In this document: in pieces, positions 1 to 29,694 of the stretch
How the letters are laid out: each line of letters opens with the position of its first letter
Numbering within the stretch: position 1 is the first letter of the stretch
The notes under the pieces: model-generated
Told to the model about the DNA's origin: nothing
The model's input: the letters and a program-made list of their open reading frames with translations, nothing else
Database searches by the model: none
NCBI GenBank assembly: GCA_002269645.1
Contig: NIVC01000034.1
Location: 62,001-126,000 of the forward strand
DNA length: 64,000 bases
DNA from: Macrostomum lignano
Lineage: Eukaryota
Direction: 5' to 3'
Program-made: the position numbers and the translations under genes

Positions 1-205
1 TTCCTATCAGGCGTCCAATGTCATCTGGCAGGAGTTCTGTCAGTCTAGTTGCTGAATTTCATAGCGCTTGGGTGTCTGGAGGGACGACAGGATCAGACCC
101 TAGTGCTGGTCAATTGTGTCTTCAGTTTGCATTTAGAGTGAAGGATTCGTTCCATTCTTCTAGTGCCAGCGCGGCAAAACTGGTTCTGCTAAAACGCGTC
201 TCTGG
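1..205 (+). CDS. Cluster A alternative exon A0 (5'-truncated by window edge)
   Basis: Encodes ...LCLQFAFRV...LVLLKRVSG, donor GG|gtagg at 206, phase 2 like the other A exons. Confidence 0.8.
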
Positions 206-3200
206 GTAGGAGTTTTTGCATCATGTTTATTCCCGCTTCTTTAGGCGAGCCTTGCCAAGTTTATTGAATTTGATAGCACACCTGTGGTAGCTGAAATTGT
301 AACCGTTTTTTATGTCTTTTTTTCAAATAAGTTACCCACTGCGTTTCGGTTGACTGCTCCTCAAAATTGCCAAATGTTTGCACATGGAGCGACGGTCAAT
401 TCAATCGAGCTGCCAACTGGAAGGTCGCAATTGACTCCAATAGTCGCTGTGCTTCCTATTGCCTCGTTCCAAATAAGATTAGGTCTCAAGCGATGACGTC
501 ATCACGTAGCTCTTCGGCACAGGCTTACACTGGAAGCTTTCTTAGTGGCTGGATTGTCGCTGAAGAGTCAAGACAGAATCCAATGTGTCTGCAATTCAAT
601 TACAAGTTTGTTCTAGCAGAGCCAGTAATATCCAAGCCTGGATTGCAACTGGCTTTGTTAAAGCGTACATTTGGGTATGTTTTTGGATTAAATTGGAGCA
701 ACGAGTCTTATTAATCAATTTTTAGCTTGATAAAAAATGCATCAAGTTTAATTAGTATATGTAAAGCATCTAGAACTCGTAAATGCCCTCTTATAGCCGT
801 CTCAATTGATTGCTCATCGACCTCGCCTACTTTTTGCACTTGGAGCGATTCACCTTTTAATCGGGCAGCCAATTGGAAGGCCGCAATCGATCCCAGCGTT
901 CGTAGCGGTGGTAGAAGCGCGTCCTATTGCTTGATTCCAAATAGACCAGTAGCTACAGAAGACACTACTCACAGCGGTAGCTTTCTTAGTAATTGGATAA
1001 CCAAAACGAAAGAATCCGGTTCGCCAGAGCAGCAGATGTGTGTTCAGTTTGCGTACAAGTTTATTGGTTCGCCAATGACTAGAATGCATCTGGCTCTGTT
1101 AAAGCGTTCATATGGGTAAGGTCTAAAACCTGTCAGGTAAAAGTGAGCTTTTTACAGTAGAGTTTCTTTGAGCAACGAGTCCTTGTGTATGCTGCTTTTT
1201 CATTTTTGCTATAGGTACGTTTGTACTTGTTTTATTGCGTTATAGTGACATGTCTTGCCTCTTCGATTAATTGCTCGTCCAATTCGCCTATGCTCTGCTC
1301 GTGGAGCGATTATCCATTCAATCGAGCCGCTAATTGGAAGGCAACAATCGATTCTAATAGTCGTTCGTCCTCTTATTGTTTAATTCCTAATGCGGCTTTG
1401 GTGATGCCTATTAATGCAGCGTCTGAACAAGGATTTGCGGCCAGCTTTATTAGCGGTTGGATCGCTGGAAAAAACCAACGCTCGATGTGCTTGCAGTTTG
1501 CGTATAAATTTTTAGTGTCATCTCAATTGCCTGAACGTAGGCAGTCTTCTCTGGCATTATTGAAACGTTCATTTGGGTATGCTTTTATTTCAACTGATGC
1601 GATAAAAAAATGAGTACAAAAAGGTTCTGCTGCCCCCATAGATTAAAAAATTTCGTCAGGAGCGATGCATTGAAAAGCCTTAAAATGCGTCGTATGTTTG
1701 GTCATGAAGCTTTACTCCGGGCCTCTGTGAGACTGTATATTCGGGTGCAACAAAAAACTACTCCGTCTCTTAGAAGTAAAAGTTTTGAGATGGAGCAATG
1801 AGCCTTTATAATGTTAATAGAGTGGAAGTATGATGACGCATGATGCATTTTCTCTGAAAATAATTACTATAGCTACTTCGTCGACACATTTAATTGACTG
1901 CTCATCGAGCTCTCCTATGCTTTGCGCATGGAGCGATGATCCTTACAATCGAGCAGCCAATTGGAAGGTGGCCATCGACCCCAGAACTGGCCACTCGTCC
2001 TACTGCATGATCCCGAATGATCGCGCCGTGTTAGCAGCCACTTCAACACGTCATCAGCAGTTTACTGGCATCTTCCTCAGCAACTGGATTGCTAAGCAAA
2101 ATCTTCAAGCTCAAAGCTCGTCGGCAAGCGAGCATCAGATGTGTCTGCAGTTCTCCTATAGACTAGTTTCAGAATCAGTATCATCTAGTGTACATCTGAC
2201 TCTTCTAAAACGATCTTTTGGGTAGAGTTATAAGTGATTTTTACATTTTTGCATGAGCGTCGTACATAATAGTTCCATGAGTTTAAATGCGAGCCTTGCC
2301 AATACAATAATCAATTAAAGGGTGTAGAATACAAGCCAACTCTAATTCTTTTAAAACAAACACATCCTCACAGAGTCTGTACATGTACATGGCTCTAGAA
2401 TCGATTGCGATTTTTCTAACCAACGCATGTGCCAATATGCCAATGATCCTGCCAACGATCTAGTTGCCTGGCGTTGGACCTCCGTGCAGGTTCCCATGGC
2501 AACGATTCCTACTCGAACAGACGCCGTCTGTCTACTACCAGTAGTAGGCAGTAGAACGCCAGTTGGTCAAGACAGCCTGTCTGGAAAGCTATGGTTTCCA
2601 GGCTGGCTGTCTGCTATTGACCTTGTCAAAGGAGATAGCAGTTCCGCGTCCATGTGCCTAGGGTTCTCTCTGTACTTTACCACAGGAGCTAGTCTTACTC
2701 TATTGAAACGGTCGCGTGGGTATGTTCTTTTACTATGGATCAAGAAGTTTAGAGCGGAAGTGTAAATCTAAATCTTACGTTATTTATTATGTCAGTGATT
2801 TGTAAATAATCGAATCATTATTTAATTTCATTAGTCGCTCTAAGCTTTGGTCTTTAGTTTTTACTGTATCTACATTTGCTTTATTTGCTCAACATTGCGA
2901 ATTAAATTTGTTTGCTTAATTACTTATATAATATTTGATGACCATAGATGTGTACTAACATCATTCGCCTAACTCTAGGAATTAATACTCGTACTTACTG
3001 TAATCTGTGCATTTATTTATAAAAATTTGGCAGCGGGGAAGACTTCAAGGTACCTTGCACCATCGGAGCCTAATTGAAATTTACTTTTTAATTATAATCT
3101 GCCTTTGCTGATTTCCTAAGAGCTAAATAATGTGCGAATTCAAACGGTCTGGTGCAAAGAAATAACGTTAAACGTTTGTTTATTGGCCAATATGCAAGTA

Positions 3201-6200
3201 ATTAACTAATTATCTATGCTCTTTGTAAAGCTTCTTTTTAAATTAGTCATGGTTTTGCGTAAAACTAGGCGTAGTTCATTCTTCCCAACTGCTGATCAAA
3301 CTAGGCGTAGTTCATTCTTCCCAACTGCTGATCAAAAGTAAGAAAAAATGACGGTTTCCAGTACACAGCAGATACCCCCAAATCCTTTTGAAAAAAAGGT
3401 CGTGCATGTCCGGCTCGAAACTCGAAAATGGCTTAGAAGTAAACTCACACTTGTGCAAAAGTGTTACTCTGTGGAAATCTGCTAGCTCGGAAAGCAGTCA
3501 AGCTAATGTTGATGCTACTGAAAGTAGTTCTGCTAGCGGTAGTGGCAGTTGGTCTGGTTGGCGTACAGTTCACGCTAGTATTGTCTCTAGTGCCGACTTC
3601 AAAGTAAGAACTTACACATCTAATGAAGTCTTCTGAAGTGCTGCCCGAAATTATTGTAGTTCAACCCTTTCCAATGTTGCAAAAAGTATTTAGAATCTGT
3701 ATCTTGTCAATTATTTAGGTCCTGCATCTCAGACTCCGAACTGTCAAATGGTCAGAAAGTGATGTCACACCTTTGCAAAAGTGTAGAACTTTGGCGTTCC
3801 AATCAAAAACCAATGCTAAGCAGCTTGTCAAATTGGAATTCAATGCAGCTATCAGTTGGAGTGGAGACAGATTTCAAGGTGATTTTTTTTAAACAAAGAA
3901 TTCTACTTAGCAGAGTACTTAGTAGGTCTTTCCCGCTGTTTGAACTCGAAATTTTCTCTGATTAAACATTTTTTGACACCTGAAGCTACCTCTACCCCAT
4001 TCAGATCTTGCTCGCAGCTTAAAGCAGTTAGGCATGGTGACAAAAAGTTAAGAACATCAAACTGCGACAATTGGGAATTGTGGACATCTGCAGCCGCTAA
4101 TAATGCCCCAGGTGGTAATTGGTTTACCCAAGCTGTTACCATTGAACCAGATACAGATTTCAAGGTTAGACTTAAATCATTAATCCTTTTTATTGTTATC
4201 TTGTTCCCCGCCTGCCAAAGTTCGAGTTTAAGAACATGTTTCTAAAACTTCGATACTACAGTGGATATTTGATATTTCGACAACAAATCCACAAGATCTT
4301 GTACAGTGGCCAGCAATATTAAAATGTCTGGAGCCGAGAAGCGAAAATCTCTCTGCGAAAGTGACGTACTATGGACTAGTGCAGTATCGAACTTGGCTAG
4401 TTGGCGTATAGTGTCTGTAGATTTGCAACAAACTACTGACTTCAAGGTAGAGTACTTGCGCAAATTGCCCTACTTTTAGCTTCCCTGCTGTCAATTTGAG
4501 GACAAGTTTAAATAATGTCTAAATAAGTAGATTTAACTAATTACTAAATCCTTCCAACTCCGCAATATTTATCATAGTTCATGCACAGTGAAAAAGCCAA
4601 AAGAAAGAAAGTTCAGTCTGCACATGTGTCGCAACGAAGATGTATGGACTTCGTCAGCTATTAGGGATAGAGTGACAGCTGCTGGTGAATGGAGAACTAT
4701 TTCGGTTGATCTGAAATCTAATACAGATTTCAAGGTAAACTTTCTTATTGTTCCCTGAGTCTTCCCTCTGCCAAAGCTACTCGTTTTTTCGCAGCTTTAC
4801 TATAAGTGGAAAATTAGTTTTTTGCATTCCCCATAATGAATATAGATCTTGTGTTTCAACGGAAAAGAAAAGAGCCGGTCAGGAAGTGGCGGGACATTAT
4901 TGGTATGAGGCAGTCTAAATTCAATTCTCGATATATACTACTAGAAATTAGTTTTCACTGAGAAATTATTGGTTCAATAATCTATTTCTAGTGAAAATAT
5001 TAAGCTATGGAAAACAGCAGCGCTATATGGACAGCAGTGGACTCCAGTGTCAGTTGACATAGTTACTGGACAAGATTTTAAGGTAAATTATGCATCGTTT
5101 GAAGTCTTCTCCGTGCATGCACTTTTAAAAACGCAGGTCTATGGCGATGATAATCCCAAATAAATAGGGTTGAACCGCTATTTTCGCAGCTCTTGCACAC
5201 AAAAAGTTCGCAAGGAGATGGGCGCCGACTTCAAGTCTGTAGTATGCGATAATCGAGTGGTGTGGAGCTCCGATGCTGCGCTTTATAGCGCCTCTACCCG
5301 CACTTGGTCTAGTGGAGTTGTTAGTTTACCTACTGGGTCCGATTTTAAGGTATCTTCAAAATGACTTTTTCTGGACATTATTGAACTTTTGCCACTAATC
5401 ATATCGGGACCTTGAAGTTTTCCGTTGCAAATAGTTTTCAGGGTAAAAAAACTGACAGAAAGAATAGCTAAATAGAGATTTTGTTACGATTTTACTTAAA
5501 GATCTTGCAGCCAAGAGAGCAGAAGTGTTCATCAACAGTCGGGCAAGGATTCAAGTCGCTTCTGTGCCACAACGAAGTTGTGTGGCGGTCTGTTACTAGC
5601 ATTGAGGCTGAGCAAAGACAAGTTGGTTCCTCGTGGTTGGTGCAGCACGTTTCTTTAGAACCCGGCTCTGATTTTAAGGTACATTATCATTGCGGTATAT
5701 CATGTTTACAGAAATCCATTGGGATGTCTGGGACACCTTGAAGTCTTTCCTGAAAATTTAAATTTTGTGTTGCACCAGAATCTAGTATTTCTACTACTGT
5801 TTTGTCTACTATTTCAACGTCAGATCTTGTAGTCAAGAAAGTACTAGAGTTCGTCAACGATCGGGCAAAGAGATCAAATCCCTGACTTGTCACAATGAGG
5901 TTGCTTGGCGTTCTGATGCCAGTGATATCGGTTCTGTTAGTCATGCTGGGTCTTGGACGCGCCAGAAAGTTAGCATGGAATCTGGATCGGATTTTAAGGT
6001 ATAGCTTATAGCTTATAACTAAATGATTAATGCCTTCTTAAAGTCTTCCCCTGTATTTCTCAAATATTCTGTAGCTTAATCAAAACTAGAGAACTGCACG
6101 ATTTTGTTCTCAACATTAGATTGTGCTCAACTTCTGAGGATAAAGAAAACGATCGTTATACAAGTCCCCATCTGTGCAAGAATAAACGTTCGCTAATAAT

Positions 6201-9200
6201 AATTTCGGTCGCATTTTAAAGTCTAAATCCTGGTGTTTATATTCGGTATCTCTAGATCTTAGGCATCGGTCTGATTTTAAGGTAAATGAAGCTCTTTCTT
6301 GCTGCCAAGCATAGTATAGGATAGTTAAATTGCCGCTTCTGAACAAAGAAAAAAAGTAAATTTTTTATTTCAGGTCTTGTACTCAAGACCATCGTCAGAA
6401 TGAGGGTCTTAAGTATAATTTTGTCACTTGCGGCAATCAAGTAGTATGGAGCGCCGCTCAGCCTAGTGTAGCTCAATGGCAGTACGCTCAGGTTGCATTG
6501 CAGCATTCGCAAGATTTCAAGGTACTTTTCTCACGGTGCTTCCCCGCTGGTATAAATGTGTTAGTTTAAGATTCAACTTTCTAATATTATTGCATTAATT
6601 TTTTAAAACAATGGTTCAGTTCGTGTCTGCAATCTGATCAAGTTCAATCAGATGGCTTGTTCACATCAGTGACATGTAACAATAAGAAATTATGGTTAGC
6701 CGATCAATCTTTAAGTGGCAAATTCAATGGCTGGTCTATTGTCAATGTCGATTTGACTTCTCGTAGGGACTTTAAGGTAAATTACTAGTAATGGGGATTT
6801 GGAATATTTTTGATTGAAGTCTTCCCTAGCAAGAATTATTTCAGTGCTAAAAATTCTCATATTTTATTTTGGCTTTGGCTTTTTAAAATGCCAGATCTTG
6901 TTCCACTTTGGAGGACCGAGAAAATGGTCGATTTATTAGTGCTCACACGTGCAAAAATGAGCGTATCTGGATTGCACCCAACTTAACTGTAAATCCAAAA
7001 GTCTTTAAACGTTGGCAGCTGGCAACTGTGCCGCTCAGTTTTATCCGAAACTCAGATTTTAAGGTGAAAAGTTTTCCCATTAGCTGCCAATTTTATTATC
7101 GAGTTATTCGATTTTTTATTGAGTAGGGTATTAAAAAAAGCAAAATTATTTTTGCACAGTTCATGCACACAAGACCAGCGAGAAACGATGGGTCAATAGT
7201 ATAACTTTACCACTTGTGGAAATCAGGTTATCTGGAAGTCTGTTGACAGCAGTAGCTTGCTTGTCTGGAGGCGTATTCAAATAAGCTTGCAACAGTTAAA
7301 TGATTTCAAGGTTTCTTTTCGGGTTCTTTGGGCTTTTCATCGACTATCAAATAGACTTCCCCGCTGCTTATACTAAATTGTTCAGCTATATGAAACCGTT
7401 CTGCATTGATATCTCTCATGAATTTTTCTGTAATTGAAAAAAAAACAAATTAGTTCGTGCCAGCAGTCGGATCGGGTCAAATCAGACGGTGTTTTCACAT
7501 CGGTTCTGTGCGATAACAAAAAGTTATGGACCACTGGCGTTACAACTGACTACCCTTTGTCAGCTAGAGCAAGTGGTTGGTCTGTTGTGAATGTAGATCT
7601 GTCTTCTAGGGGAGACTTTAAGGTAACAATATTTAAATAATATTCTTTTGAAACTTGCAAAGTACCTTGAAGTGTCTTTTAACTGCCTAATCAACAGTTA
7701 AATCAAGTGTCCAATAAAAATTATGAAAAACATTTTAGCTCATGTAAACAAGCCAATGAAATTGAAAGAAACGAAATTTTCACTTCGATTTTGTGCAAAA
7801 ACAAGCAGCTTTGGTCAACCGCAAATAGTTCATCTGTTCGAACTTGGCTATCTCCTAGTAGCTACAACTGGGACACCATATCAATTTCTATAAATTCCGA
7901 TAGCGATTTTAAGGTATATACGAGCGTAATTAGCTGTCTTCTTTCCACATAATTACAGATGTTTTGGCAAAAATTCAATCAAAATTTGTTAATCGGTTCA
8001 ATATTTAGAGCGTTACATACAAACAAACAAATCTTAGACATTTAGTATATGTGGATGGATGAATGGGTAGATAGTTTAAGTTTAAAAAACGGCTCCTTTA
8101 GCAAGGTATTTTGAATCAGTCTCCGCCATGAAACTCGATAAAATTCAAGAGTTTATCTATCAGAATTGTTTAATTCATTAAGCGTGGCTAATGATCTTAT
8201 TTAGTTCATGCAGCCAATCTGACGTCAATGACAGTGGTAGAACTCGAACTGCCATGCTGTGTCACAGTGATAAACTTTGGATAAGTCATAAAGATGATTC
8301 AAGTAACAGATGGTCTAGCGTGCAAGTTTCTGTTTCCTCGGGAAATGATTTTAAGGTATTAATAGTGACATTGTTAGTTATAGTATTTTTTAAACATGTG
8401 ATCCTCTTAGCATTCAATAAACCCTTTTAGCCAAGATATATCAAGCATTTAAAAGTTTAGGAAACTTTGGCCGTTTTTTCCTTAAATCGGTCGCATGCAT
8501 ACATACATGCAAACTTGCATAGTATAAGCGATCTGACAAATAATCCATATAGGTAAAGTAGATTTTGCTTTCCTTGTGTCTTCATTTTGCTGCCAATTTT
8601 TAAGTGACTCAACTCACAGCGTAAGCTTGTACTAACATTTAAATTATTTCCATCTCAGTTCGTGCCACCAGACTGAGCGTAGCGAGTCTGGCCAGGTGAA
8701 AACATCTGTCACTTGTGACAATGTAAAAATTTGGTCAACACCCGCGACTGCCGCTCTTAAATCTAAGCTAGCTGGGATACACGGAAAATATTCAGTGTGG
8801 AATCCGGCTCAAGTTACCATAACAACATCGGTAGACTTTAAGGTATTTTTGTTGGAAAGATTATTTTCTAGGGTGTCGTTTCTCGCTGCCAGAACGAATT
8901 CTTAGGCACAGCACATTCAAGGAAGTTTTCTTGTCGAAACCAAGAAAAATAGTGAATTTAACTTGTGCGAGAAAGCTTCCTTTAGTTTTGTGCAACGAAA
9001 TGTTACCAGCGCTATTAAATTTTAGCAATACAAACAAACGACGATAATGCAATCTTAAACTTGTAGTTCTTGCCGTACAGTGGAAGCAAAACAGTTTGGT
9101 GGTAGCGGTGTGTTCTGTCAGAATAGCCCTCTGTGGCAGCAATCTTATTCTAGCAGTGTCTCATTGGATGCCAAATGGGCTACAGCTGTTGTTGATGTAC

Positions 9201-11323
9201 AATCGACTTCTGACTTTAAGGTTGTTGATTGTACGGATTATGTATTACTACTGTAATTTTAAGAATCATATAATGCAAATGTAAGATGCAATAGCCAGAT
9301 ATTTTTTAATTTTCTTGGTACTAGAGTAATTTTTTCACTCTTTCTAGACTGGATAATAACATTCCAATACGAAGCGTATCGTCTAAACACTTAGTTATCT
9401 AAATGTTACAGTTATCTCGGTCAACAAGTCAGGTCAGAAAATTACCATTAAGAGTAGATTCATTAAGTCTACACCGACTTAGTAGTATTTATTGACAAAT
9501 ACGAGCGTAGTTGTACGAGTTCTTTGAAAGAACTTGTTTCAAAATGACTCTAGCTTAACATGTCTTTTCAGAAGTCTTGAATGTAGGAAAGCAAAACAAC
9601 CTGAGGAGAGTTTGTCTCGCAGTTGTCTTCGAATTTTAAGCACACTTGAACCTAAAATATACAAATTCCTCAAGTTTGACACGTAACGTTTTTTTTCCCA
9701 ACACCCCTTTATTAGTGCACTTGCTGCCAAAGAAATCTGATAAATTATTTGAGGGTTGGGGATGTAGTTACGGCCCTAAAAGAATTTTGTTTCTTTGTTT
9801 CTAGCTCCTGCGAACGACGCAATGTTGACTTGGAGACTAAAAAAGCTGGCGTATTCTGGTAATACCGGTTGAGTAATATGATAGAACAATAAATAGTTAT
9901 GAGTGCAACAATAAATTATTCATTAATAACTGCAGCAGTTCTTTGCAAACTTATCATCAATTTTAGTTTGTAATAACTTCGATTCTACGATAAATTACTC
10001 ATTATGATTCCTAAAGAAGCGCTAGTTCGATATTATACTGAATTTAATTAGTAAAAGACTTTTAATAAGTTTTCAATATATTAATTTCTAATTTCTAAAA
10101 TTAATGGCACTAAATTATATTTGCTTGGATCTCTGTTAAATTTTCAGTAGTGCTTCAATTAAGTATTGTGATCGATTCATAACCTAGCAATTTAATAGAA
10201 CGGTTATGTGTTTCAAAAAATGCTGTATTGGTTCAAGTTCCGTTTTGTTAGGTTGAGCTACATATATAGTGTCTCTTAGACTAGTGTATCACTTATCAAA
10301 TCGAACCATTGTTACTCAACCGGCATTGCCTGCTCAGTAAATATCCCCGTTACTGCCTGTACAGCCACAGCAAGACCCTGTGGACATCAAAAAGTAATTT
10401 TGGAAGTAGTGCTATTAGAAAATCTTGGAGTCGGCAAGTTATTGATTTAAGAGATGCCTCGGACTTCAAGGTAAATTTAAATATTAGGAAACACTCAAAT
10501 CCTTATGGAACGATAAAAGAGCATAAAACGAAAATGTTAACTTATTTCTTATTTTATTTTTTAGCTCATTTTCGAAGGTACCATTCCGGCCAACAATCCG
10601 AACGCCCGAATTTGCGTTGACAACATCACGGCTTATCATCGACCGTGTCACCGTGAGTTTTTCAGCGGCTTTTTCCTAAGTATCTTTATAAGATAGTTGA
10701 TTAGGTAATGTAGCAGGTACTGATTTGTACTGATGTAATTGATGTTCTATTTCTTAGAAATCGCCGCCTCAGCCTACGAAGCGTCGATGCGTCGCTGGCT
10801 CGAACCAATGGTATTCATCTTCATTGGCGCCCTCGCCTTCGCCCTGATCATCGCCGTGTCCATCTTTGCCATTCGAGTCAACCGTCGTCGCAGCAAGAAA
10901 TTGTCGCCGGGCAGCAGCGAGGACGGCTCTGCTTCGCCGCAGCGACCGAACCGTCAGCAGCATCACCGACGCCAGCAGGAGGCCATGCTGCTGCACGCTG
11001 AACGTCTCGCCGATGGACCTGCTTCGGGTTCAGCCGCCGTCGGCGCTGTGCCGATCGGCCACGGCCACGGGCCCCGGCGCCCGGCTCCGCCAGTCCCGGC
11101 CGAGCAGCCGAGCCTTGACGAGCTGCTTAGCAACGGACATCGAGCTGCTGCTTCTGCTACCGCTCCGGCCGCCGCTGCTGGTCATAACGATCCGCCGCCT
11201 CGCTACGAGGAAGCCATGGGCCTGGTTGCTTCCGCCGCCGCTGGCAGCAGCTCCGCCTCCGACCAGCTGCCGCCGCCGCATCCGCCTCGACTGAATCGCC
11301 GAAACGGCGGTCACGTGGTTTAA
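1..11323 (+). CDS. MAM-domain single-pass transmembrane receptor with two mutually exclusive exon clusters; 5' end lies outside the window. Model: one A exon + one B exon + 10565..10652 + 10758..11323
   Basis: Joined exons rebuild a MAM fold: CDF..C.W (A5 IDCDFSNQRMCQY), S.WI....CL.F.Y, LW....W..V.L...F, LIFEG...ICVDNIT...C. A hydrophobic helix MVFIFIGALAFALIIAVSIFAI, a basic stop-transfer RVNRRRSKK and a PPPRYEEA motif follow. All junctions are GT-AG with compatible phases (1|A|2|B|0|C1|1|C2). Confidence 0.88.
332..674 (+). CDS. Cluster A alternative exon A1
   Basis: ataag|TT ACC CAC TGC ... VDCSSKLPNVCTWSDGQFNRAANWK...LALLKRTFG|gtatgt; 343 nt (3n+1). Confidence 0.85.
797..1115 (+). CDS. 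Cluster A alternative exon A2
   Basis: ttatag|CC GTC ... IDCSSTSPTFCTWSDSPFNRAANWK...LLKRSYG|gtaagg; 319 nt (3n+1). Confidence 0.85.
1246..1576 (+). CDS. Cluster A alternative exon A3
   Basis: ttatag|TG ACA ... INCSSNSPMLCSWSDYPFNRAANWK...LLKRSFG|gtatgc; 331 nt (3n+1). Confidence 0.85.
1873..2221 (+). CDS. Cluster A alternative exon A4
   Basis: ctatag|CT ACT ... IDCSSSSPMLCAWSDDPYNRAANWK...LLKRSFG|gtagag; 349 nt (3n+1). Confidence 0.85.
2374..2719 (+). CDS. Cluster A alternative exon A5 (divergent, closest to the canonical MAM start)
   Basis: tcacag|AG TCT ... IDCDFSNQRMCQY...MCLGFSLYF...LLKRSRG|gtatgt; 346 nt (3n+1). Confidence 0.85.
3026..3053 (+). promoter_or_regulatory. Cluster B candidate docking site TTTGGCAGCGGGGAAGACTTCAAGGTAC
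   Basis: Single copy between A5 and B1. Its reverse complement GTACCTTGAAGTCTTCCCCGCTGCCAAA matches a motif in the intron before nearly every B exon. Confidence 0.82.
3399..3603 (+). CDS. Cluster B alternative exon B1
   Basis: ag|G TCG TGC: SCMSGSKLENG...HLCKSVTLW...W...DFK|gtaaga; 205 nt; purine-rich acceptor. Confidence 0.75.
3719..3878 (+). CDS. Cluster B alternative exon B2
   Basis: SCISDSELSNGQKVMSHLCKSVELW...W...ETDFK|gt; 160 nt. Confidence 0.82.
4005..4164 (+). CDS. Cluster B alternative exon B3
   Basis: SCSQLKAVRHGDKKLRTSNCDNWELW...NW...DTDFK|gt; 160 nt. Confidence 0.82.
4296..4446 (+). CDS. Cluster B alternative exon B4
   Basis: SCTVASNIKMSGAEKRKSLCESDVLWTSAVSNLASWRIVSVDLQQTTDFK|gt; 151 nt; not in the ORF track. 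Confidence 0.82.
4578..4734 (+). CDS. Cluster B alternative exon B5
   Basis: SCTVKKPKERKFSLHMCRNEDVWTSS...EWRTISVDLKSNTDFK|gt; 157 nt. Confidence 0.82.
4846..5082 (+). CDS. Cluster B alternative module B6, split into 4846..4902 + 4992..5082
   Basis: SCVSTEKKRAGQEVAGHY-TG|gtatga...tttctag|T-ENIKLW...QW...GQDFK|gt; the intron interrupts the second Cys codon. Confidence 0.75.
5190..5349 (+). CDS. Cluster B alternative exon B7
   Basis: SCTQKVRKEMGADFKSVVCDNRVVW...TW...GSDFK|gt; 160 nt. Confidence 0.82.
5502..5678 (+). pseudogene. Cluster B exon B8 with an apparent 1-nt deletion (pseudo-exon or assembly indel)
   Basis: Starts SCSQESRSVHQQSGK like B9 but is 177 nt (3n); LCHNEVVW...GSDFK is in another frame. 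Confidence 0.7.
5824..5998 (+). CDS. Cluster B alternative exon B9
   Basis: SCSQESTRVRQRSGKEIKSLTCHNEVAW...SW...GSDFK|gt; 175 nt. Confidence 0.82.
6120..6281 (+). pseudogene. Cluster B exon B10, frameshifted pseudo-exon
   Basis: LCSTSEDKENDRYTSPHLCKNK, then the first conserved Trp is missing; SWCLYSVSLDLRHRSDFK is in another frame; 162 nt (3n). Confidence 0.7.
6374..6521 (+). CDS. Cluster B alternative exon B11
   Basis: SCTQDHRQNEGLKYNFVTCGNQVVWSAAQPSVAQWQYAQVALQHSQDFK|gt; 148 nt. Confidence 0.82.
6620..6776 (+). CDS. Cluster B alternative exon B12
   Basis: SCLQSDQVQSDGLFTSVTCNNKKLW...GWSIVNVDLTSRRDFK|gt; 157 nt. Confidence 0.82.
6895..7063 (+). CDS. Cluster B alternative exon B13
   Basis: SCSTLEDRENGRFISAHTCKNERIW...RW...NSDFK|gt; 169 nt. 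Confidence 0.82.
7160..7310 (+). pseudogene. Cluster B exon B14 with an in-frame stop
   Basis: SCTQDQRETMGQ*YNFTTCGNQVIW...NDFK; TAG at 7197-7199 where paralog B11 has AAG; 151 nt. Confidence 0.72.
7454..7622 (+). CDS. Cluster B alternative exon B15
   Basis: SCQQSDRVKSDGVFTSVLCDNKKLW...GWSVVNVDLSSRGDFK|gt; 169 nt. Confidence 0.82.
7739..7913 (+). CDS. Cluster B alternative exon B16
   Basis: SCKQANEIERNEIFTSILCKNKQLW...NW...DSDFK|gt; 175 nt. Confidence 0.82.
8205..8355 (+). CDS. Cluster B alternative exon B17
   Basis: SCSQSDVNDSGRTRTAMLCHSDKLW...RW...GNDFK|gt; 151 nt. Confidence 0.82.
8659..8842 (+). CDS. Cluster B alternative exon B18
   Basis: SCHQTERSESGQVKTSVTCDNVKIW...VW...SVDFK|gt; 184 nt. 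Confidence 0.82.
9067..9220 (+). CDS. Cluster B alternative exon B19
   Basis: SCRTVEAKQFGGSGVFCQNSPLW...KW...TSDFK|gt; 154 nt. Confidence 0.82.
9805..10470 (+). CDS. Cluster B alternative module B20, split into 9805..9858 + 10365..10470
   Basis: SCERRNVDLETKKAGVF-TG|gtaata...gtacag|C-HSKTLW...SW...ASDFK|gt; intron in the same Cys codon as in B6. Confidence 0.78.
10565..10652 (+). CDS. Constant exon, MAM C-terminus
   Basis: ttag|LIFEGTIPANNPNARICVDNITAYHRPCH-C|gtgagt; phase 0 to 1; single copy. Confidence 0.85.
10758..11323 (+). CDS. Constant terminal exon: transmembrane helix and Pro/Ala-rich tail with PPxY
   Basis: cttag|AA ATC; 22-residue hydrophobic stretch, RRRSKK, PPPRYEEA, stop TAA at 11321-11323. 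Confidence 0.85.
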
Positions 11324-13797: not shown

Positions 13798-16717
13798 ATG
13801 TCTGCCGAAACAGCGGGAGGCTCCAGCGGCGGTGGCAGCAACAATCTGACCGAATACTTGAAGCGCTACACTGAACCTCTGCCAAAGAAAAAGAAACGCC
13901 GCGTCGATAAGGGCGGTGTTAGCAGCGACGATGGTAGTAAAAAACGTGTTAAAAGACGCGACAAGCGATTAAAACCTGTTATCATAGGTGAAGACTTCGA
14001 AGATGAAGTCGATGAAGAAGAGGAGGCTGCAATAGCTCTGGCCAAGCAGCAGTTGGCTGAATCGGCTGCCGGACGTAAGAAATTATTCAAATCCTCCTTT
14101 CAGACTGTTGCTGGTCCAGACGATGATAATGATTCGGAGTCAAGCGGTTGGCAGATACCCAACAGTAATCTTTCTCTACCACGCAAAGGAAACCGAAAAA
14201 ATGGTAGTCAGTTTTCGCAGCACGGACAGCAAAAACCCGATAGCGACTTGTCGTCACCACGTCGAGGGCAAGGGTCACAAGATTCTGACTTGTCACCACC
14301 GCGCCCGGCACAAGGATCAAAAGATAACGACTTGTCGCCATCACGGCGAACACAAAGACGTCGAGATGATGACTTGTCTCCACCACGTCGAAGGCAAAGA
14401 CCTAGAGACACAGACTTGTCGCCACCACGCCGAGGACAAGGACCTCGAGATGATGACTTGTCGCCTCCTCGCCGTAGCCAAAAACCTCAAGATAATGACT
14501 TATCGCCACCTCGTCGAGGTAGACCTCAAGATGACGACTTATCGCCACCAAGACGAGGACAAAAACGTCAAGATAACGATTTATCGCCACCAAGACGAGG
14601 ACAAAGGCGTCAAGATGACGATTTATCGCCCCCAAGACGAGGACAAAGGCGTCAAGATGACGACTTGTCCCCACCTCGTCAAGGTAGACCTCAAGATGAC
14701 GACTTGTCTCCACCAAGACGAGGACAAAGGCGTCAAGATGACGACTTGTCCCCACCTCGTCAAGGTAGACCTCAAGATGACGACTTGTCTCCACCAAGAC
14801 GAGGACAAAGGCGTCAAGATGACGACTTGTCCCCACCTCGTCAAGGTAGACCTCAAGATGACGACTTGTCTCCACCAAGACGAGGACAAAGGCGTCAAAA
14901 TGACGATTTATCGCCACCAAGACGAGGACAAAGACCTCAAGCTAACGAATTGTCGCCACCGCGAAGGCGACCACAGCAGGACGCTGATTCTTCGCCGACC
15001 CGACGTGGAGACCCAGGTCCCAACCAAGCAAAAGGCGCTTTCGACGAAGACAGCGGTAGCGACGCCGAAGCGAACGCTCTATCGGCTCAGGTGCGCCGAC
15101 GGGCTAAACTGACGCACCCGAGCGAGGTGATGCTGGATGAAGATGACGATGAAAAGTTGGGCAGGTGAGTTATCTTGGTCTCTTAAAATACTTATTTAGC
15201 ATGGATTTTTGGGCATAAGCTCATGGCTTTCAGGGGATCTTTAATACTCGTAGCGCATAAATTGGTTTCAAAGTAAAAAACTGAGGTAAACAAACTATCA
15301 GATTAGTGTGGTAAAACGCCACCAGTACACAGTTGCTACCTATAGCCGTAATGAGGCTTCGATGGATTTTTAGTTCATCCTACAGATCTTAAAAGACTGG
15401 ATTACCCATGCTACTCAAAGTAAGGGTGACCCAGCAACTGAGGATTTGGGAGTCTGGCCCAGCAACTGACACTCTGGGAGGCTGGCCCAGCAACTGACAC
15501 TCTGGGAGGCTGGCCCAGCAACTGAGGATTTGGGAGGCTGGCCCAGCAACTGAGGATTTTGGAGGCTGGCCCAGCAACTGACACTCTGGGAGGCTGGCCC
15601 AGCAACTGACACTCTGGGAGGCTGGCCCAGCAACTGACACTCTGGGAGGCTGGCCCAGCAACTGAGGATTTGGGAGGCTGGCCCAGCAACTGAGGATTTT
15701 GGAGGCTGACCATGTTCCTAAGAAATATTTTTCAGTTATAGTGAGTTCAAATTCCTATCAGATTTGCCATAGAAAGGAGGTTGTCAGGAATGAAATTTCA
15801 AAGTTTGCTGGACTACGTACCAAAATTTATGTTTATATAACAAATCCAAAACATTTATTGTACCTTATTAAAGATATCCAGTAAATAGAATTGTCTAGCG
15901 GAAGCCATAGAACTCGTAGCCAACATTGGTTAGCAAAGGCTGTAGTGGTGGCCTTTCTCATTGTCCTTATCAATTAGTTATGCTTTTTATCAGTAGAAAT
16001 GTTTAGCTACAATAATTGCTGAATACTCCTAGCTATAGAAAATGAGCCAATCCGTAACGCCCCACTAGATACGCTACGGCAATTCGTCGCAAGAAGCAGC
16101 CGGATCCCAGAAAGTCAAAAAAGGCCGCCGAGAAGCCAGAACCAACGCCCGAAGAGTTGGCCAAAGCTGAGGAATTAAAAGCCCAATACGCTCGCTGGGG
16201 CTCCGGCTTGGCCCAGGCTGCGGAACGCGAGCAGCGCGCTGTCGAAGCTCAAATTGAGTCGGCTAAGCCTCTAGCTCGAAGTCGCGATGATGCCGATTTA
16301 GACTCGATGCTGCGAGGCCAACTCCGGGTCGACGATCCCATGGCGGAGTTTCTGCGCGACTCGGAGCGTCGCCGAGCCGAGAAGGCGGCTAAGAAAGCGG
16401 CTAAGAAAGCTTTGAAAAAGAAAAATAAGAAAGAAAAAGAGCGAAAGAAGATCAAACGGGAGCCAGGTGAGAAACTCGGCAGGTTAAGTCGATCGGCTTC
16501 GTCCGCATCGCCGTCGCCGTCGCCGCCCCCGCCGCCCAAGCAGCGGCCTCGCTACGACGGCCCGCCCGGGCCGCCCAATCGATTTGGCATCGAGCCCGGC
16601 TACCGCTGGGACGGCGTCGATCGGAGCACCGGCTTTGAGAAGCGCTACTTTGAATCGATTAATCAGCGTAAAGCGCTTAGCCAGGAAGCTTATAAATGGT
16701 CAACTGAAGATATGTAG
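13798..16717 (+). CDS. BUD13: BUD13/CWC26 RES-complex splicing factor, join(13798..15164,16069..16717)
   Basis: N-terminal EYLKRY, about 19 DxDLSPPRR repeats, C-terminal ARYARWGSG-like segment, KPLARSRDDADLD, DDPM and PPNRFGIEPGYRWDGVDRSTGFEKRYF; phase-2 GT-AG intron. Confidence 0.92.
15330..15880. mobile_element. Dispersed repeat carrying a 28-bp minisatellite (ggcccagcaactgacactctgggaggct), copy 1, in the BUD13 intron
   Basis: Array at about 15420-15710; both flanks (cttaaaagactggatt...ctactcaaagt; aaatatttttcagtta...) recur around the copy near 17 kb. Confidence 0.6.
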
Positions 16718-16939: not shown

Positions 16940-17540
16940 TGCTACCTGACTGTACTTAGGCTTTGCTGGATTTTAAGTTCATTCTACACATCTTAAAAGA
17001 CTGGATTGGCCCATCCGCTACCCATGCTACTCAAAGTGAGGGGTGGCCCAGCAACTGATGCCTTGGAAGGTTGGCCCAGCAACTGACACTCAGGGAGGCT
17101 GGCCCAGCAACTGACACTCTGGGAGGCTGGTCAGGCAACTGACACTCTGGGAGGCTGGCCCAGCAACTGAGACTCTGGGAGGCTGGCCCAGCAGCTGACA
17201 CTCTGGGAGGCTGGTCAGGCAACTGACACTCTGGGAGGCTGGCCCAGCAACTGAGCATCTGGGAGGCTGACCCAGAAACTGAGGATCTGGGAGGCTGGCC
17301 CAGCAACTGTTGATTTTGGCGGCTGGCCCTGTTCCTAGGTTTCTGGTTCTGTTCCTCAGGGACTACTTAAACTAGTTTTTGTTGAGTTGTTGCTTTGAAA
17401 TATTTTTCAGTTATTTTGAGAGCAAAATCCTGTCAAATTATGTTATAGGAAGAAGCTTGAAACCAATAAAATTGTCAAATTTTGCTTGACTCTAAGTAAC
17501 AAAAATTATATTTACTTAAAAATTCCTAAACGTTTGAAGG
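16940..17540. mobile_element. Dispersed repeat carrying the 28-bp minisatellite, copy 2
   Basis: Same unit at about 17045-17330 with homologous flanks. Confidence 0.6.
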
Positions 17541-20595: not shown

Positions 20596-23125
20596 ATGCC
20601 ACACTACCGGCCTTTAGCAACCAAATTCTTCCAAGCCTCAATTGCCTTAGCAACTAAAAATTCTAGCGCCGAAGTAGTTGCCGTCTGCGTTGCTATGCAA
20701 CACCAACAGCCGCAGCGACGCAATGCTTCAATCGGCGTCGCTAGCGGCAACCAGCGTCATCACCAACAGCAGCAGCATCAACGACGTCGACCACTTCCGC
20801 CGCCGACTGCATCTCACAGCGCCGACAGTTTAACATCCGGCATGCAGCGCTTGTCGGTGTCGAATAGACGGGGACTGACAACCGCCGCGTCGAATTCCGC
20901 AGGTAAAGCCGTCGGCGCCAAACCGACAACGGCGGCGGCGACCAGCGTCAGGCGTCGTACTATTGGCAGCGGTAACGGCGTCGACGGACAGCCTCCTAAA
21001 CCAGGTCAGGTGACCTCTCTAGCCGACGTGGCCAACCTTCTGTCAAACGGTCGCGTCAGCAACATTGTGGTGATGGCTGGTGCGGGAATTTCCACAGCTA
21101 GCGGCATACCGGATTTCCGTACGCCGGGCACCGGGCTCTACGATAATTTGAAACAGTTCAAGATTCCTTATCCTGAGGCTATCTTCGATTTGGATTATTT
21201 CTTTGTTAATCCTAAGCCATTCTTTGCTTTGGCTAAAGAGCTGTACCCGTCTGGAAGGTACCGGCCTAACCTGGTGCACTGCTTCTGTCGTCTGCTGCAC
21301 GATAAAGGGATGCTGTCTAGGTGAGCTGGGCTTGTGTTTGATGTACTGTCTCGTGGGTGAGATTTCAAGGGTGAGATTGGCTGTTTCATGGATGAGATTG
21401 GCTGTCTTATGGGGTGAGATTGGCTGTTTCATGGGTGAGATTGGCTGTTTTATGGGTGAGATTGGCTGTTTTATGGGTGAGATTGGCTGTTTCATGGGTG
21501 AGATTGGCTGTCTTATGGTGAGATTGGCTGTTTCATGGGTGAGATTGGCTGTTTCATGGGTGAGATTGGCTGTTTCATGGGTGAGATTGGCTGTCTATGG
21601 GTGAAATTGGCTGTCTTAGGGTGAGATTGGCTGTTTCATGGGTGAGATTGGCTGTCTTATGGGGTGAGATTGGCTGTTTCATGGATGAGATTGGCTGTTT
21701 CATGGGTGAGATTGGCTGTTTCATGGGTGAGATTGGCTGTTTCATGGGTGTGATTGGCTGTTTCATGGGTGTGATTGGCTGTTTCATGGCTGTCTCATGG
21801 GTGAATTGGCTGTTTCATGGGTGTGATTGGCTGTAACTTCATGTGATACGCTTATTCCATAGGATAAGTAGATCAAATCAATCTCATACATACTATATAT
21901 TTCTAACAAACACTCCAGAGTCTACACTCAGAACATTGACGGCCTGGAGAGACTAGCCGGCATCCCCCCGGAGAAGCTGGTGGAAGCTCACGGCACCTTT
22001 GCCACCGCCACCTGCACTCACTGCTGCCGTCAGCTCCCTGCCGTGTACGTTAGGCCGATGATACTGCAAGGTCAGGTGCCCATCTGCAGCAAGCTGCGCG
22101 GCCAAGGCGTCTGCCCAGGCGTTCTCAAACCCGACATTGTATTCTTTGGCGAAGATTTACCAGCCAGGTTCTGGCACTATTTGAGAGATTTTGCCCACTG
22201 CGATTTGTTGATTGTGCTGGGGACCAGTTTGCAGGTGAGTGCATCTAAGGCATTGCTATTGCAACTGACCCTTATTGCCTAATTGCCTAATTATCTTAAT
22301 GATATCCCCCTAATTACCCTCTCTCCTAATAACATTTTCCCCTAATTGCACTTTCCTTAATTACCCCTAATTAACATCCGCCCTAATTACCCCTTTAATT
22401 ACCTCTAATTAACCCCCCTAATTACCCTCCTCCCTAATTACCCTCTGCCCAAATTACTCACCCTCATAATTTAATTGCCCTCTTCCCTAATTACCCCCCT
22501 TAATTGCCTCACCCTAATTATCTACCCTCAGGTGGAGCCATTCGCAGGCATAGTAGACTCAACTCGCCTAACGGTGCCCCGCCTATTAATAAACCGGGAC
22601 GCAGTCGGCCCATTCCGCGGCGCCAAGCCTCGCCGACCAAACGATCTAGCGGCTACTGGTGATCTTGTTGAACGAGTGCTTGAGTTGGCTAATCTGGCTG
22701 GCTGGTCAGATGAACTCGTGACCTTGTCTGATCGGATTAATCTTGATATTGACGCCTGTCCCGATCCGTTCGAGTCTAATAATAATAATAGTAATAATAG
22801 TCCGACTCCCGCTCAGACTCGTCCGCAGCATCATCTGCCACCGCTGCCTCATGCCAAGCAGCAACCGTCAGCGAAGCCGGCAACTGAATCAACAACTTCG
22901 GTTGCCAATAGCAACAACAATGCCAGACGAGCTTTAGAAGCTGGTAATAATAAATCTGTCATAGCTGCCGCTGTTCGAGTGAAACCCGGCATACCATTGG
23001 TTCAACGGCACAAGCGTTCACAGAGTCAGCAAAGAAGACAGCCGCCTCGCCAACTGTCGACTTCCAGCAGCAGCAGTAGTTCGTGCAGTAGTCCAGATTC
23101 CGATTCGACATCTTCGGGCGATTGA
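20596..23125 (+). CDS. SIRT3: Class I sirtuin NAD-dependent deacylase, SIRT3-like, join(20596..21320,21919..22234,22532..23125)
   Basis: [32 protein letters not shown]...[29 protein letters not shown], two Cys pairs, [14 protein letters not shown]|VEPFA. Confidence 0.88.
21365..21835. repeat. 21-bp minisatellite (gggtgagattggctgtttcat) in SIRT3 intron 1
   Basis: About 20 visible tandem units. Confidence 0.9.
22262..22525. repeat. Degenerate ccctaatta repeat in SIRT3 intron 2
   Basis: Recurrent ctaatta/ccctaatt cores. Confidence 0.7.
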
Positions 23126-23814
23126 ATTTTTTTTAATTGAAGTGCGATTTTTTTAATATCGGGAATTATTTAGCTAGTTAGATGCTGATCGCACTACTTA
23201 TCTATCAGTAGTTAGTAGTATTTAAAGTGGCAAAATATTTCATTCAAGTTAAATTTGTTAGATAGCTTCCTAGATTTACTACTTAATGCCGAATTTTGAG
23301 TATAGTAGTTAAAGAGTATTGTAACAAGCAAATAATTTTAAAGAACACAACAACACTGGTAAATGAAAAATCCTGTTTAAGATTTAAAATTTAATATCGT
23401 TGCCTTTAAATAGTAAATAATAACTTCTTTTGTTTGCTCCTTCTTCCATTTATGCATTTTTCGTGCGCACGTTTTTCTAAATTTATACTACTGTTGAATA
23501 AGTGTACAGTAGTATAAAAAGAATTCAATTTTAGTAGACGTTTGCCTATCTTAAAATAAGATTTAACAATTAACACTTGAGAAATTATATATAGAGCTTC
23601 GTGTTGAACTTTCATTCACCCATCTGACCAAAATTGGTCATATTTGAGTAAGATAACACTGATATTGACAATCTGACTGTTTTCTTCAGTTTAAACTTGT
23701 GTGTCTAACGCGTGCTTTTCACAAAATATTTATGTTTATTTAATAGATACTAGAATAACTAGCTAGATATGTTACTCGCAAGGGTGCTACTCGTTTATCT
23801 TCTCTTTTAGTAAC

Positions 23815-24100
23815 GCAATTTGCCCTTCTTTCCTTACTGCTCTCTCATTGGCTGAGCTAAATTGGGCCTGTCCCCTAGGCTGAGTTTCGTCCGTCTGACT
23901 TTGACCCTCTCTCCTTACTGCTCTCTCATTGGCTGAGCTAATTTGGGCCTGTCCCCTAGGCTGAGTTTCGTCCGTCTGACTTTGACCCTCTCTCCTTACT
24001 GCTCTCTCATTGGCTGAGCTAAATTGGGCCTGTCCCCTAGGCTGAGTTTTGTCCGTCTGACTTTGACCCTCTCTCCTTACTGCTCTCTCATTGGCTAGGC
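23815..24100. repeat. 81-bp tandem repeat, about 3.5 copies
   Basis: ccttactgctctctcattggctgagcta...ctgactttgacc repeated. Confidence 0.88.
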
Positions 24101-24519
24101 CAGATTGGTCGCTCAGCATTGTTACAACTTTAATTGCGAATGACATATCTAAAGTTCGTCTAGTATGTGATATTTATTTTTAACAAAATGATTTCTAATC
24201 AGAGCACGGTTGTTATTTATTAAATTTATAGTCACATGGATTGGTAAATAATTAATAAACGAATGGTTCGACTCTCTCTCGGCCTGTTTTTCGACTTTTA
24301 TTTTCTTTGTTGAACTGCATTCGCAGTTCTTGTTTTGTGTAGAATTTTACATTTATTTTTTATATATAAAATCTACTTGAAATGCATGTACAAGTACACG
24401 GAAATCCTTCCTGGCAGAGCCTTACTTACTTTCTTTGTCCTATCTATAAGGACCAGTTATTTTTTTCTGGCGATTACCAGAAATGTACATACCCAAAGAA
24501 CATCATCTACATATTTGAG

Positions 24520-24700
24520 AGATACCCAATCAGACATCCACTCTTACTGGATAGATAGATACCCAATCAGACACCCACTCTTATCAGATAGATACCCAAT
24601 CAGACACCAACTCTTATCAGAGAGATACCCAATCAGACACCAACTATTATCAGATAGATACCCAATCAGACACCCATAGCCATCAGAAAGATACCCAATT
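24520..24700. repeat. About 30-bp repeat (agatacccaatcagacacc)
   Basis: About 5 tandem units upstream of msrB. Confidence 0.8.
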
Positions 24701-24811
24701 ATAAAAAACCAAATAAAAGTCTCACAATAGTTTTGTCAATCGGATTTATGCCAATATCAGCCAATAAAAATTCCGCCACTGCTGTTCCGGTGCTGCCAGC
24801 TTCTCATCGCG

Positions 24812-26871: not shown

Positions 26872-27059
26872 TGCTTGGAACTTTTAATATATAATTGCCG
26901 TAGTGCGTTTGTAATTGACAAGCGGTGTTTTCCTGTTGTTTTATTACCCTGCTCTCTACCTGATTATAATTTTGCATCGTGTTTGTCAGCGCTAATTAAT
27001 ATCACACGCTTTCATGGATCACCAAATCTGCTGATATCTGGACTGTGAACTGGACCCAC

Positions 27060-27850
27060 GAACCCTCCTCCAACTGTGCGTCTCTCTCCCCCTAAACACC
27101 CACCCCACCCCCTTTAACTGTTCGCCTCTCTGCCCCTGTACACCCACCACATCCCCTTTAACTGTTCGCCTCTCTGCCCCTGTACACCCACCACACCCCC
27201 TTTAACTGTTCGCCTCTCTGCCCCTGTACACCCACCCACCCCTTTAACTGTTCGCCTCTCTGCCCCTGTACACCCACCACACCCCCTTTAACTGTTCGCC
27301 TCTCTGCCCCTGTACACCCACCACACCCCCTTTAACTGTTCGCCTCTCTGCCCCTGTACACCCACCCACCCCTTTAACTGTTCGCCTCTGCCCCTGTACA
27401 CCCACCACCCCCTTTAACTGTTCGCCTCTGCCCCTGTACACCCACCACACCCCCTTTAACTGTTCGCCTCTCTGCCCCTGTACACCCACCACACCCCTTT
27501 AACTGTTCGCCTCTCTGCCCCTGTACACCCACCCCACCCCTTTAACTGTTCGCCTCTCTGCCCCTGTACACCCACCACACCCCCTTTAACTGTTCGCCTC
27601 TCTGCCCCTGAACACCCACCCCACCCCTTTAACTGTTCGCCTCTCTGCCCCTGTACACCCACCACACCCCCTTTAACTGTTCGCCTCTCTGCCCCTGTAC
27701 ACCCACCCCACCCCTTTAACTGTTCGCCTCTCTGCCCCTGTACACCCACCACACCCCCTTTAACTGTTCGCCTCTCTGCCCCTGAACACCCACCCCACCC
27801 TCCTCCAACTGTGCATCTCTCTCCCTTCATACCCAACCACCCTCCTCCGA
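27060..27850. repeat. About 45-bp minisatellite (tttaactgttcgcctctctgcccctgtacacccaccacacccc)
   Basis: About 16 tandem units. Confidence 0.9.
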
Positions 27851-29470: not shown

Positions 29471-29694
29471 AAAGTCGTTAATAAGTCTTTAAGACCCCGT
29501 TGGCATTACTGTTACAGAATGCAAGCGAGCAGAGTATAAAATCGTGCTAAATGACTTAGCTAATGTGGCAAATTTTAAGTAGCAATCATATTAGCCTTCA
29601 AAAATTTTCTGTTATATTATCTCTTCGATCTAAAAGCAAAGGTAGTTCAACAGTTCAACAGAGTTTCAGTATCATCTCCATCTGTACGTCAATC

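Follow-up and report, generated by a model that had tools for sequence, protein, structure and literature searches.

The window analyzed here, a stretch of 64,000 nucleotides of Macrostomum lignano DNA, opens inside the gene BOX15_Mlig029915g2, in which two consecutive arrays of predicted alternative exons, denoted here cluster A and cluster B, are enclosed by constant exons (Table 1). The complete gene is contained in the locus L001 (the same contig, gene plus 10-kb flanks), which adds 14.7 kb on the 5' side of the window; positions 1-21323 of the window correspond to L001 14684-36006 at 100% identity, and L001 coordinates equal window coordinates plus 14683. The basis throughout is computational, with one genome. 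Splicing an A exon, a B exon and the two 3' exons together produced a match to one database protein, P0001 ('hypothetical protein BOX15_Mlig029915g2 [Macrostomum lignano]', 422 aa, carrying PF00629, MAM), which contains a single exon of each array, A1 and B3, with the other 13 A exons skipped. The Pfam PF00629 match across the spliced A, B and constant exons (E = 1.6e-8, 35 bits, with the cut-off at 26.4) covers profile positions 8-158 of 158, and the predicted product is a single-pass membrane protein in which a signal peptide is followed by the one MAM domain, the transmembrane helix and a cytoplasmic tail. From M. lignano, protein searches with the constant part returned P0001 only and no other isoforms or paralogues, and no second MAM gene was found within the 64-kb window.

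Cluster A comprises 14 homologous exons, with the exon ends spanning L001 10881 to 17402; eight of these exons lie complete on the 5' side of the window, so that the count of A exons, which the original prediction left to the upstream sequence, comes to 14 once that sequence is added. The A exons are 310-391 nt long, and all 14 have a length of 3n+1 and the identical splice phase. Each encodes approximately the first three-fifths of the MAM domain, with the 3' end reading ...LLKR..G followed by gt, and the protein identity between A exons is 30-50%. The splice of exon 1, A, B and the constant exon yields an open MAM frame for every A exon (14 of 14). Because the A exons are of 3n+1 length, as are the intact B exons, skipping or double inclusion of an A exon shifts the frame.

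Table 1 Features of the BOX15_Mlig029915g2 locus; positions are those of the window unless preceded by L001 or the contig accession. Selector and docking assignments are predictions.
Feature	Position	Strand	Description
Window	NIVC01000034.1:62001-126000	forward	Macrostomum lignano, GCA_002269645.1
Exon 1	L001 10001-10070	+	ATG, signal peptide; ends one base into a codon; sole upstream constant exon
Cluster A docking site	L001 10147-10166 = window -4536 to -4517 = NIVC01000034.1:57464-57483	sense	TTGGCAAGGCTCGTTGCTCC; exact, single copy in the 36-kb locus
Degenerate selector before A1	L001 10400-10422		GGAGTTAACGAGATTC; 74 nt 5' of acceptor; -17.5 kcal/mol
Variable exon A9, 3' part	1..205	+	Starts at L001 14531 (152 nt before the window); frame ends ...LVLLKRVSG then gt; homologous to other A exons
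Selector for A10	243..261 (core 245-258 GCGAGCCTTGCCAA)	+	17 contiguous bp, -29.3 kcal/mol with L001 10144-10162 (5' part of docking site); intron z = -6.8 (200 shuffles)
Variable exon A10	332..674	+	343 nt, 3n+1; about first three-fifths of MAM domain
Selector for A11	693..715 (695-709 GGAGCAACGAGTCTT)	+	16 contiguous bp, -29.4 kcal/mol with L001 10146-10168; intron z = -5.9
Variable exon A11	797..1115	+	319 nt, 3n+1
Selector for A12	1169..1187 (1170-1185 GAGCAACGAGTCCTTG, one-base bulge)	+	12 contiguous bp, 16 with bulge; -27.5 kcal/mol; intron z = -5.3
Variable exon A12	1246..1576	+	331 nt, 3n+1
Selector for A13	1787..1816 (1792-1806 GGAGCAATGAGCCTT)	+	17-18 contiguous bp, 26 bp total; -35.4 kcal/mol; intron z = -5.9
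Variable exon A13	1873..2221	+	349 nt, 3n+1
Selector for A14	2278..2303 (core 2289-2302 GCGAGCCTTGCCAA)	+	14 contiguous bp, -29.2 kcal/mol; intron z = -6.3
Variable exon A14	2374..2719	+	346 nt, 3n+1; last and most divergent A exon
Cluster B docking site	3027..3052	+	TTTGGCAGCGGGGAAGACTTCAAGGT; 307 nt after A14 donor
Cluster B	3399..10470	+	~19 B-type units ending GAYTTYAAG then GT, plus one further degenerate unit; next ~50 MAM residues
Constant exon	10565..10652	+	End of MAM domain (LIFEGTIPANNPNARICVDNITAYHRPCH); identical in P0001
Last exon	10758..11323	+	Transmembrane helix, cytoplasmic tail, stop codon

The original prediction placed one copy of a short motif in each of the five A-A introns of the window. 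All five copies are present where they were claimed to be (Table 1) and end 73, 87, 60, 66 and 71 nt before the acceptors at 332, 797, 1246, 1873 and 2374 (taken from the exon mapping), in agreement with the proposed spacing of about 60-90 nt; the distance from the preceding donor varies from 20 to 215 nt among these introns. The 8-mer YGAGYCTT stands as the common core of the copies, except that the copy at 1170-1185 is an inexact match, with a 1-nt insertion. For the whole array, each of the 13 A-A introns, which are 113-296 nt long, contains a sense-strand putative selector located 26-93 nt 5' of the next acceptor; the A10 selector ends ~71-73 nt from its acceptor, and the A13 selector is found at 56-66 nt despite the 296-nt length of its intron.

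Alignment of the A-A introns on the motif gave a mean pairwise identity of 0.73 for the 12-nt core and of 0.28-0.29 for the 30-nt flanks, compared to 0.28 expected from the base composition, and the top k-mers common to the 13 introns are all pieces of the motif. Given that the flanks are at the compositional level while the core is conserved and the exons are 30-50% identical, the A-A introns are randomized except for the motif. The 20-mer consensus (up to 3 mismatches) gave 2 matches against 0 expected and the 12-mer GAGCAAYGAGYC gave 4 against 0.85, whereas the 8-mer core, taken by itself, is about as frequent in the window as chance would have it (11 matches vs 8.7 expected); hence the signal lies in the longer motif and its placement. 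A dispersed repeat family was considered and rejected, no scattered copies of the motif having been found in the window, and an Rfam scan of the gene produced no match, so that the motif does not belong to any known intronic RNA.

The key element of the original prediction was that a complement of the motif, exact or as a close variant, would be located 5' of the window, after the last constant exon and ahead of the first A exon. An exact copy of the predicted 20-mer, TTGGCAAGGCTCGTTGCTCC, was indeed found in intron 1, between exon 1 and A1, 76 nt after the exon 1 donor, 330 nt before A1 and ~4.5 kb 5' of the window, such that a prediction made from sequence only turned out to be exact with respect to both the 20-mer and its location. 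The probability of encountering an exact, pre-specified 20-mer by chance within 14.7 kb is, by simple arithmetic, ~1e-8, and 100 shuffles of L001 gave zero matches to the docking 20-mer with up to 3 mismatches. The usable docking region extends over approximately L001 10142-10172. A candidate local hairpin that would close the docking site (L001 10217-10235) is weak (-14.8 kcal/mol, fold z-score -0.98). Five metagenome matches to the docking 20-mer were dismissed: all come from GC-rich contigs without further similarity, and their number is about that expected by chance. As also claimed originally, no common pairing target exists between the last A exon and B1; none was found near the constant exon either, and no complement of the motif occurs anywhere in the 64-kb window, even when up to 3 mismatches are allowed. 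On these three grounds, a downstream or bidirectional docking site for cluster A was rejected.

RNAduplex pairs the docking region with the 13 A-A introns at -29 to -37 kcal/mol, the partner being the motif every time; each intron outperforms all 200 of its own dinucleotide shuffles (z = -4.2 to -6.9), and the ungapped docking-selector runs are 12-18 bp long, G-U pairs counted. In 31-nt windows, the selectors reach -27 to -35 kcal/mol, compared to -9.9 ± 3.6 kcal/mol for 660 windows located 3' of cluster A. The 9-nt docking core AGGCTCGTT (L001 10153-10161) is covered by runs of at least 10 bp from 12-13 of the 13 introns, and because the selectors overlap on this core, the pairings are predicted to be mutually exclusive. 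The selectors of A10 and A14 retain the 3' half of the 24-nt register and pair with the 5' half of the docking site; those of A11 and A13 retain the 5' half and pair with the 3' half and the flank, and the A13 selector reaches into both docking-site flanks. In the core columns, 85-100% of the selectors are capable of pairing, and the GAG center is invariant. Among the 17 core transitions from the perfect complement, 12 are C-to-T or A-to-G changes that retain a G-U pair; this wobble bias (12 vs 5) is suggestive but not statistically significant.

Strong selectors precede 13 of the 14 A exons, and A1 has only a degenerate one. Outside cluster A, the docking site also pairs with sequences in exon B17 (8670-8700, -30.2) and in the last exon (11094-11130, -27.9). 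Because these two outside coding sequences pair well, a high pairing energy alone is no proof of function; the case for the selectors is built on several features taken together, namely uniqueness, position, the presence of one selector in each intron, one contested core and conservation over a random background.

Cluster B shows a parallel organization. Its putative docking site pairs with the intron before each B exon at -24.6 to -39.6 kcal/mol; for the introns of B2-B18, the energy is -27.7 kcal/mol or better, with the longest ungapped runs of 8-18 bp. The A docking site pairs with B introns at -13 to -22 kcal/mol, as opposed to -29 to -37 kcal/mol with A introns, and the B docking site with A introns at -14 to -28 kcal/mol, as opposed to -25 to -40 kcal/mol with B introns. 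Cross-cluster pairing is weak, and these energies support the originally proposed independence of the two docking systems. The accompanying claim that the A motif is unrelated to the B selector largely survives, with the qualification that both docking sites start with ATTTGGCA and that cross-pairing reaches 11 bp: A selectors ending in TTGCCAA are able to pair with the B docking site over as many as 11 bp, and the strongest cross-talk is that of A10, 11 bp via the shared end TTGCCAA/TTGGCA. A 12-bp run between the A1-A2 intron and the B docking site was put down to chance because it is AT-rich. In their predicted pairing, the A and B systems are effectively, though not absolutely, orthogonal.

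Taken together, these observations lead us to interpret the motif copies as the selectors of cluster A, a set of 14 mutually exclusive exons with the docking site in intron 1, a reading to which we assign a probability of about 0.85. The gene appears to pick one of the 14 A exons by competing RNA pairing of the Dscam1 type. Because all selectors need the same docking core, one selector at a time would pair with the docking site in a given pre-mRNA. The resulting duplex would loop out every A exon upstream of the paired selector and leave the exon 1 donor and one acceptor ~76 + 26-93 nt apart, an ordinary intron size in this gene, and the A exon behind that acceptor would then be used. A transcript with no A exon, or with two, would be out of frame and would presumably be degraded. 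A1, which is closest to the docking site, is probably the default choice. Cluster B would be chosen likewise, through its own docking site at 3027-3052, and given the separate docking sites and the low cross-pairing, the two choices would multiply, so that the single MAM domain would be built as 14 x about 17-18 combinations.

In Dscam1 exon 6, the downstream variants are held silent by a general repressor. The silencing of A exons downstream of the chosen one is not accounted for by the docking/selector model, and no second pairing system was found.

The A exons are clearly tandem duplicates, and published models derive selectors from duplication of one arm of an intronic stem-loop (PMC6071210). 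Thus, the motif might be an inert relic that was copied with each duplicated exon and is still awaiting decay. As history, the duplication origin of the motif is probably true. Inertness, however, is hard to reconcile with a core that is still at 0.73 identity between flanks at the random level (0.28-0.29 vs 0.28) and exons at 30-50% protein identity, and leaves unaccounted for both the exact reverse complement of the consensus, present as a single copy in intron 1, and the constant acceptor spacing in introns of 113-296 nt; we regard it as extremely improbable. That constant position 5' of each acceptor would also be natural for a splicing-factor binding site, an enhancer or silencer for which RNA pairing is irrelevant; the invariant GAG center could suit protein binding, and the known docking/selector systems also need proteins, for example, hrp36 (PMC6071210). 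Yet a protein site is expected to recur in the same sense, whereas intron 1 carries the antisense of the consensus; furthermore, the selectors keep different parts of the register (the 3' half in A10 and A14, the 5' half in A11 and A13), all still complementary to the docking site, and the substitutions lean to G-U-compatible changes. We therefore consider a pure protein site highly unlikely.

It is also conceivable that the pairing is real but plays another role, for example, in setting the balance between A1 and the rest of the exons or in sequestering the exon 1 donor to slow splicing. A1 lacks a strong selector and is the exon used in the sole annotated mRNA, exon B17 and the last exon contain selector-like sequences, and the selector model leaves the silencing of downstream exons unexplained, all of which would be compatible with such a role. 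Nevertheless, the arrangement of one acceptor-proximal selector per intron and one contested core is the layout of Dscam1 exon 6 activation (PMC6071210), and a general brake on splicing would not require 13 conserved copies. This possibility appears unlikely to us, and competitive selection of a single A exon remains the preferred interpretation.

Other flatworms have homologues of the gene product. A profile of the 14 spliced variants, which likewise brought up no further M. lignano isoform, identified MAM proteins in Schistosoma mattheei, S. margrebowiei, Heterobilharzia americana, Trichobilharzia regenti and Protopolystoma xenopodis, with these homologues matched over the B/constant part only. 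Two S. mattheei models are identical in the constant part and differ in their initial B-type exons, and the 10 kb on the 5' side of the constant exon in S. margrebowiei (locus L007) contain at least four B-like exon ends (..DYK or ..DFK then gt). This S. margrebowiei stretch, which falls short of any A cluster, contains no recognizable selector motif. The gene family, with its predicted alternative B-type exons, has homologues in schistosomes.

To our knowledge, in-depth descriptions of large docking-site/selector arrays are confined to arthropod Dscam1 and a small number of insect genes. Combining the results described above, one arrives at a broader reading in which flatworms independently evolved a Dscam1-like generator of diversity, with two RNA-governed clusters, ~250 isoforms and a family reaching schistosomes and other parasitic flatworms; we give this joint reading an even chance. 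If true, then, as far as the searched literature goes, no multi-cluster docking/selector system would have been described before from outside the arthropods, and none that diversifies a MAM domain. A clean two-cluster case in a flatworm would mean that the RNA-pairing solution to the task of choosing exactly one exon arose more than once. It would also point to a hypervariable MAM receptor on flatworm cells that has so far escaped description and that could serve self-recognition, adhesion or immunity. Because the system is unusually compact (introns of 113-296 nt and a docking site of 20-30 nt) and M. lignano can be made transgenic, the mechanism should be easier to dissect than that of Dscam1.

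Under the Graveley model for Dscam1 exon 6, a docking-selector duplex loops out the upstream variants and activates one exon (PMC6071210). Cluster A resembles this system, which is known from Drosophila and other pancrustaceans (PMC6071210), in having a single docking site just after the upstream constitutive exon and one selector 5' of each variable exon, all contesting the same docking nucleotides; in both cases, what the variable exons contribute is a portion of an extracellular domain involved in recognition. The differences are substantial as well. The two systems belong to different phyla, Platyhelminthes and Arthropoda, and their sequences are unrelated; the flatworm product is a small single-pass protein with one MAM domain rather than a receptor of the Ig superfamily; the array consists of 14 exons as opposed to about 48, with very short introns (113-296 nt), and its first exon lacks a strong selector. 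Furthermore, Dscam1 exon 6 comes with an hrp36-like repressor, a locus control region and experiments, whereas the flatworm cluster is known from sequence alone.

Competing-structure clusters include Dscam1 exons 4, 6, 9 and 17 as well as those in 14-3-3zeta, Mhc, MRP1 and srp (PMC6071210). As in the four Dscam1 clusters, each cluster of the flatworm gene has its own docking/selector set. Unlike Dscam1 exons 4 and 9, where docking is downstream (PMC6071210), both flatworm docking sites are upstream of their clusters; in addition, the two flatworm clusters encode consecutive pieces of one domain and their docking sites share the 5' octamer ATTTGGCA, which sets them apart from multi-cluster Dscam1. 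With insect 14-3-3zeta, Mhc, MRP1 and srp, the flatworm gene shares the competition of intronic complements for one partner, with mutually exclusive exons as the predicted outcome; in those genes, however, docking is downstream or pairing is bidirectional, usually with 2-5 exons, whereas no bidirectional set was found in the flatworm. The pattern of cluster A is the same as that in the duplication model of Ivanov and Pervouchine (PMC6071210), under which the selector travels with the duplicated exon and the docking arm stays single, and the degenerate A1 selector fits this model, too. The model describes an origin rather than a family, and the flatworm lineage and gene are new to it. A full-text literature search yielded no account of the gene, nor any of flatworm splicing by docking sites and selectors. 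In every sequence-level feature, the layout of cluster A is that of the docking/selector class of the Dscam1 exon 6 type, and, as far as the searched literature goes, this predicted membership extends the class to a new phylum and a new protein family.

The sequence of the B docking site, the intronic element complementary to the selectors that precede the B exons, looks like a relic of a B exon end together with its 5' splice site: positions 3023-3052 of the window read ..GEDFK|gt, and the internal GACTTCAAG|GT is identical to genuine B exon ends. Because of this match, the complementarity of the B selectors that contain ACCTTGAAGT extends to the 5' splice-site regions of B exons and could add a layer of local masking there. 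The docking sites of the two clusters of alternative exons, A and B, both open with the octamer ATTTGGCA (A, 10145-10152 of L001, the fetched locus including the upstream flank; B, window 3025-3032), and up to 11 bp are possible between the B docking site and the A selectors with a TTGCCAA end, those of A10 and A14. The octamer and the cross-pairing may reflect a common origin, a shared protein site, or chance.

In each cluster, the weakest selector is that of the first exon, A1 or B1. The weak B1 selector CTTCCCAACTGCTG is doubled by a 36-nt tandem duplication (window 3262-3336; 2.1 copies, 100% identity), and the duplicated selector lies about 65-100 nt upstream of the likely B1 acceptor (3398). 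Weak selectors at these positions are consistent with proximal exons requiring little help or, alternatively, with usage being balanced.

Sequences resembling either partner of the A pairing also occur within exons. In the last exon, which encodes the cytoplasmic tail, and in B17, coding sequences resemble A selectors and are predicted to pair with the A docking site, and GAGCAGCCGAGCCTTGAC, in the last exon, nearly copies the A6 selector GAGCAACGAGCCTTGAC; the likeness in the last exon and B17 is possibly due to chance in GC-rich coding sequence. The docking core recurs in exon A5 as a 10-nt copy in the sense orientation, AAGGCTCGTT (L001 12861-12870), and the W-S-D codons ATGGAGCGAYGA, conserved in several A exons, can pair in runs of 10-12 bp with the docking site's 3' half.

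The units of cluster B are non-uniform (window 6120-6281, 7160-7310, 5502-5678, 4846-5082 and 9805-10470): one is degenerate and carries stop codons, B13 contains an in-frame TAG, B8 loses its reading frame when started at the canonical acceptor, and an additional intron interrupts both B6 and B19, which nevertheless stay open.

Features of the locus and its homologues (window coordinates unless L001 or L007 is named)
Feature	Position or identifier	Property
A1 selector	L001 10400-10422, upstream of window	-17.5 kcal/mol
B1 selector	3279-3333	split short helices only
B selectors with ACCTTGAAGT	5409, 5735, 7662	
Degenerate B unit	6120-6281	stop codons
A-selector-like coding sequence, exon B17	8670-8700	-30.2 kcal/mol with A docking site
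A-selector-like coding sequence, last exon	11094-11130	-27.9 kcal/mol with A docking site
W-S-D codons ATGGAGCGAYGA in A exons	384-395, 1301-1312, 1928-1939	
Homologues, Schistosoma mattheei	protein models P0002/P0003	alternative B-type exons
Homologue, S. margrebowiei	locus L007: 911, 1957, 5535, 7621	alternative B-type exons

The protein product of the next downstream gene (window 13800-15170) contains tandem repeats encoded by 42/81-nt units, the ..DDLSPPRRGQ.. units lying at 14245-14960. Satellite-like tandem repeats are abundant in the remaining window (15423-15708, 17044-17309, 21363-29472 and 58902-64000); for example, a 28-nt tandem unit lies on both sides of the region at about 16-17 kb, C-rich arrays of 16- to 44-nt units at 26-29.5 kb account for the pronounced GC skew, and more than 200 copies of a 23-nt unit extend from 58.9 kb to the end of the window.

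Homologous MAM/transmembrane genes of schistosomes and other parasitic flatworms contain several alternative B-type exons 5' of a constant exon, LILEGTIPAGYPDARICVDNITSY, which is highly conserved. The hypervariable architecture is probably old within flatworms.
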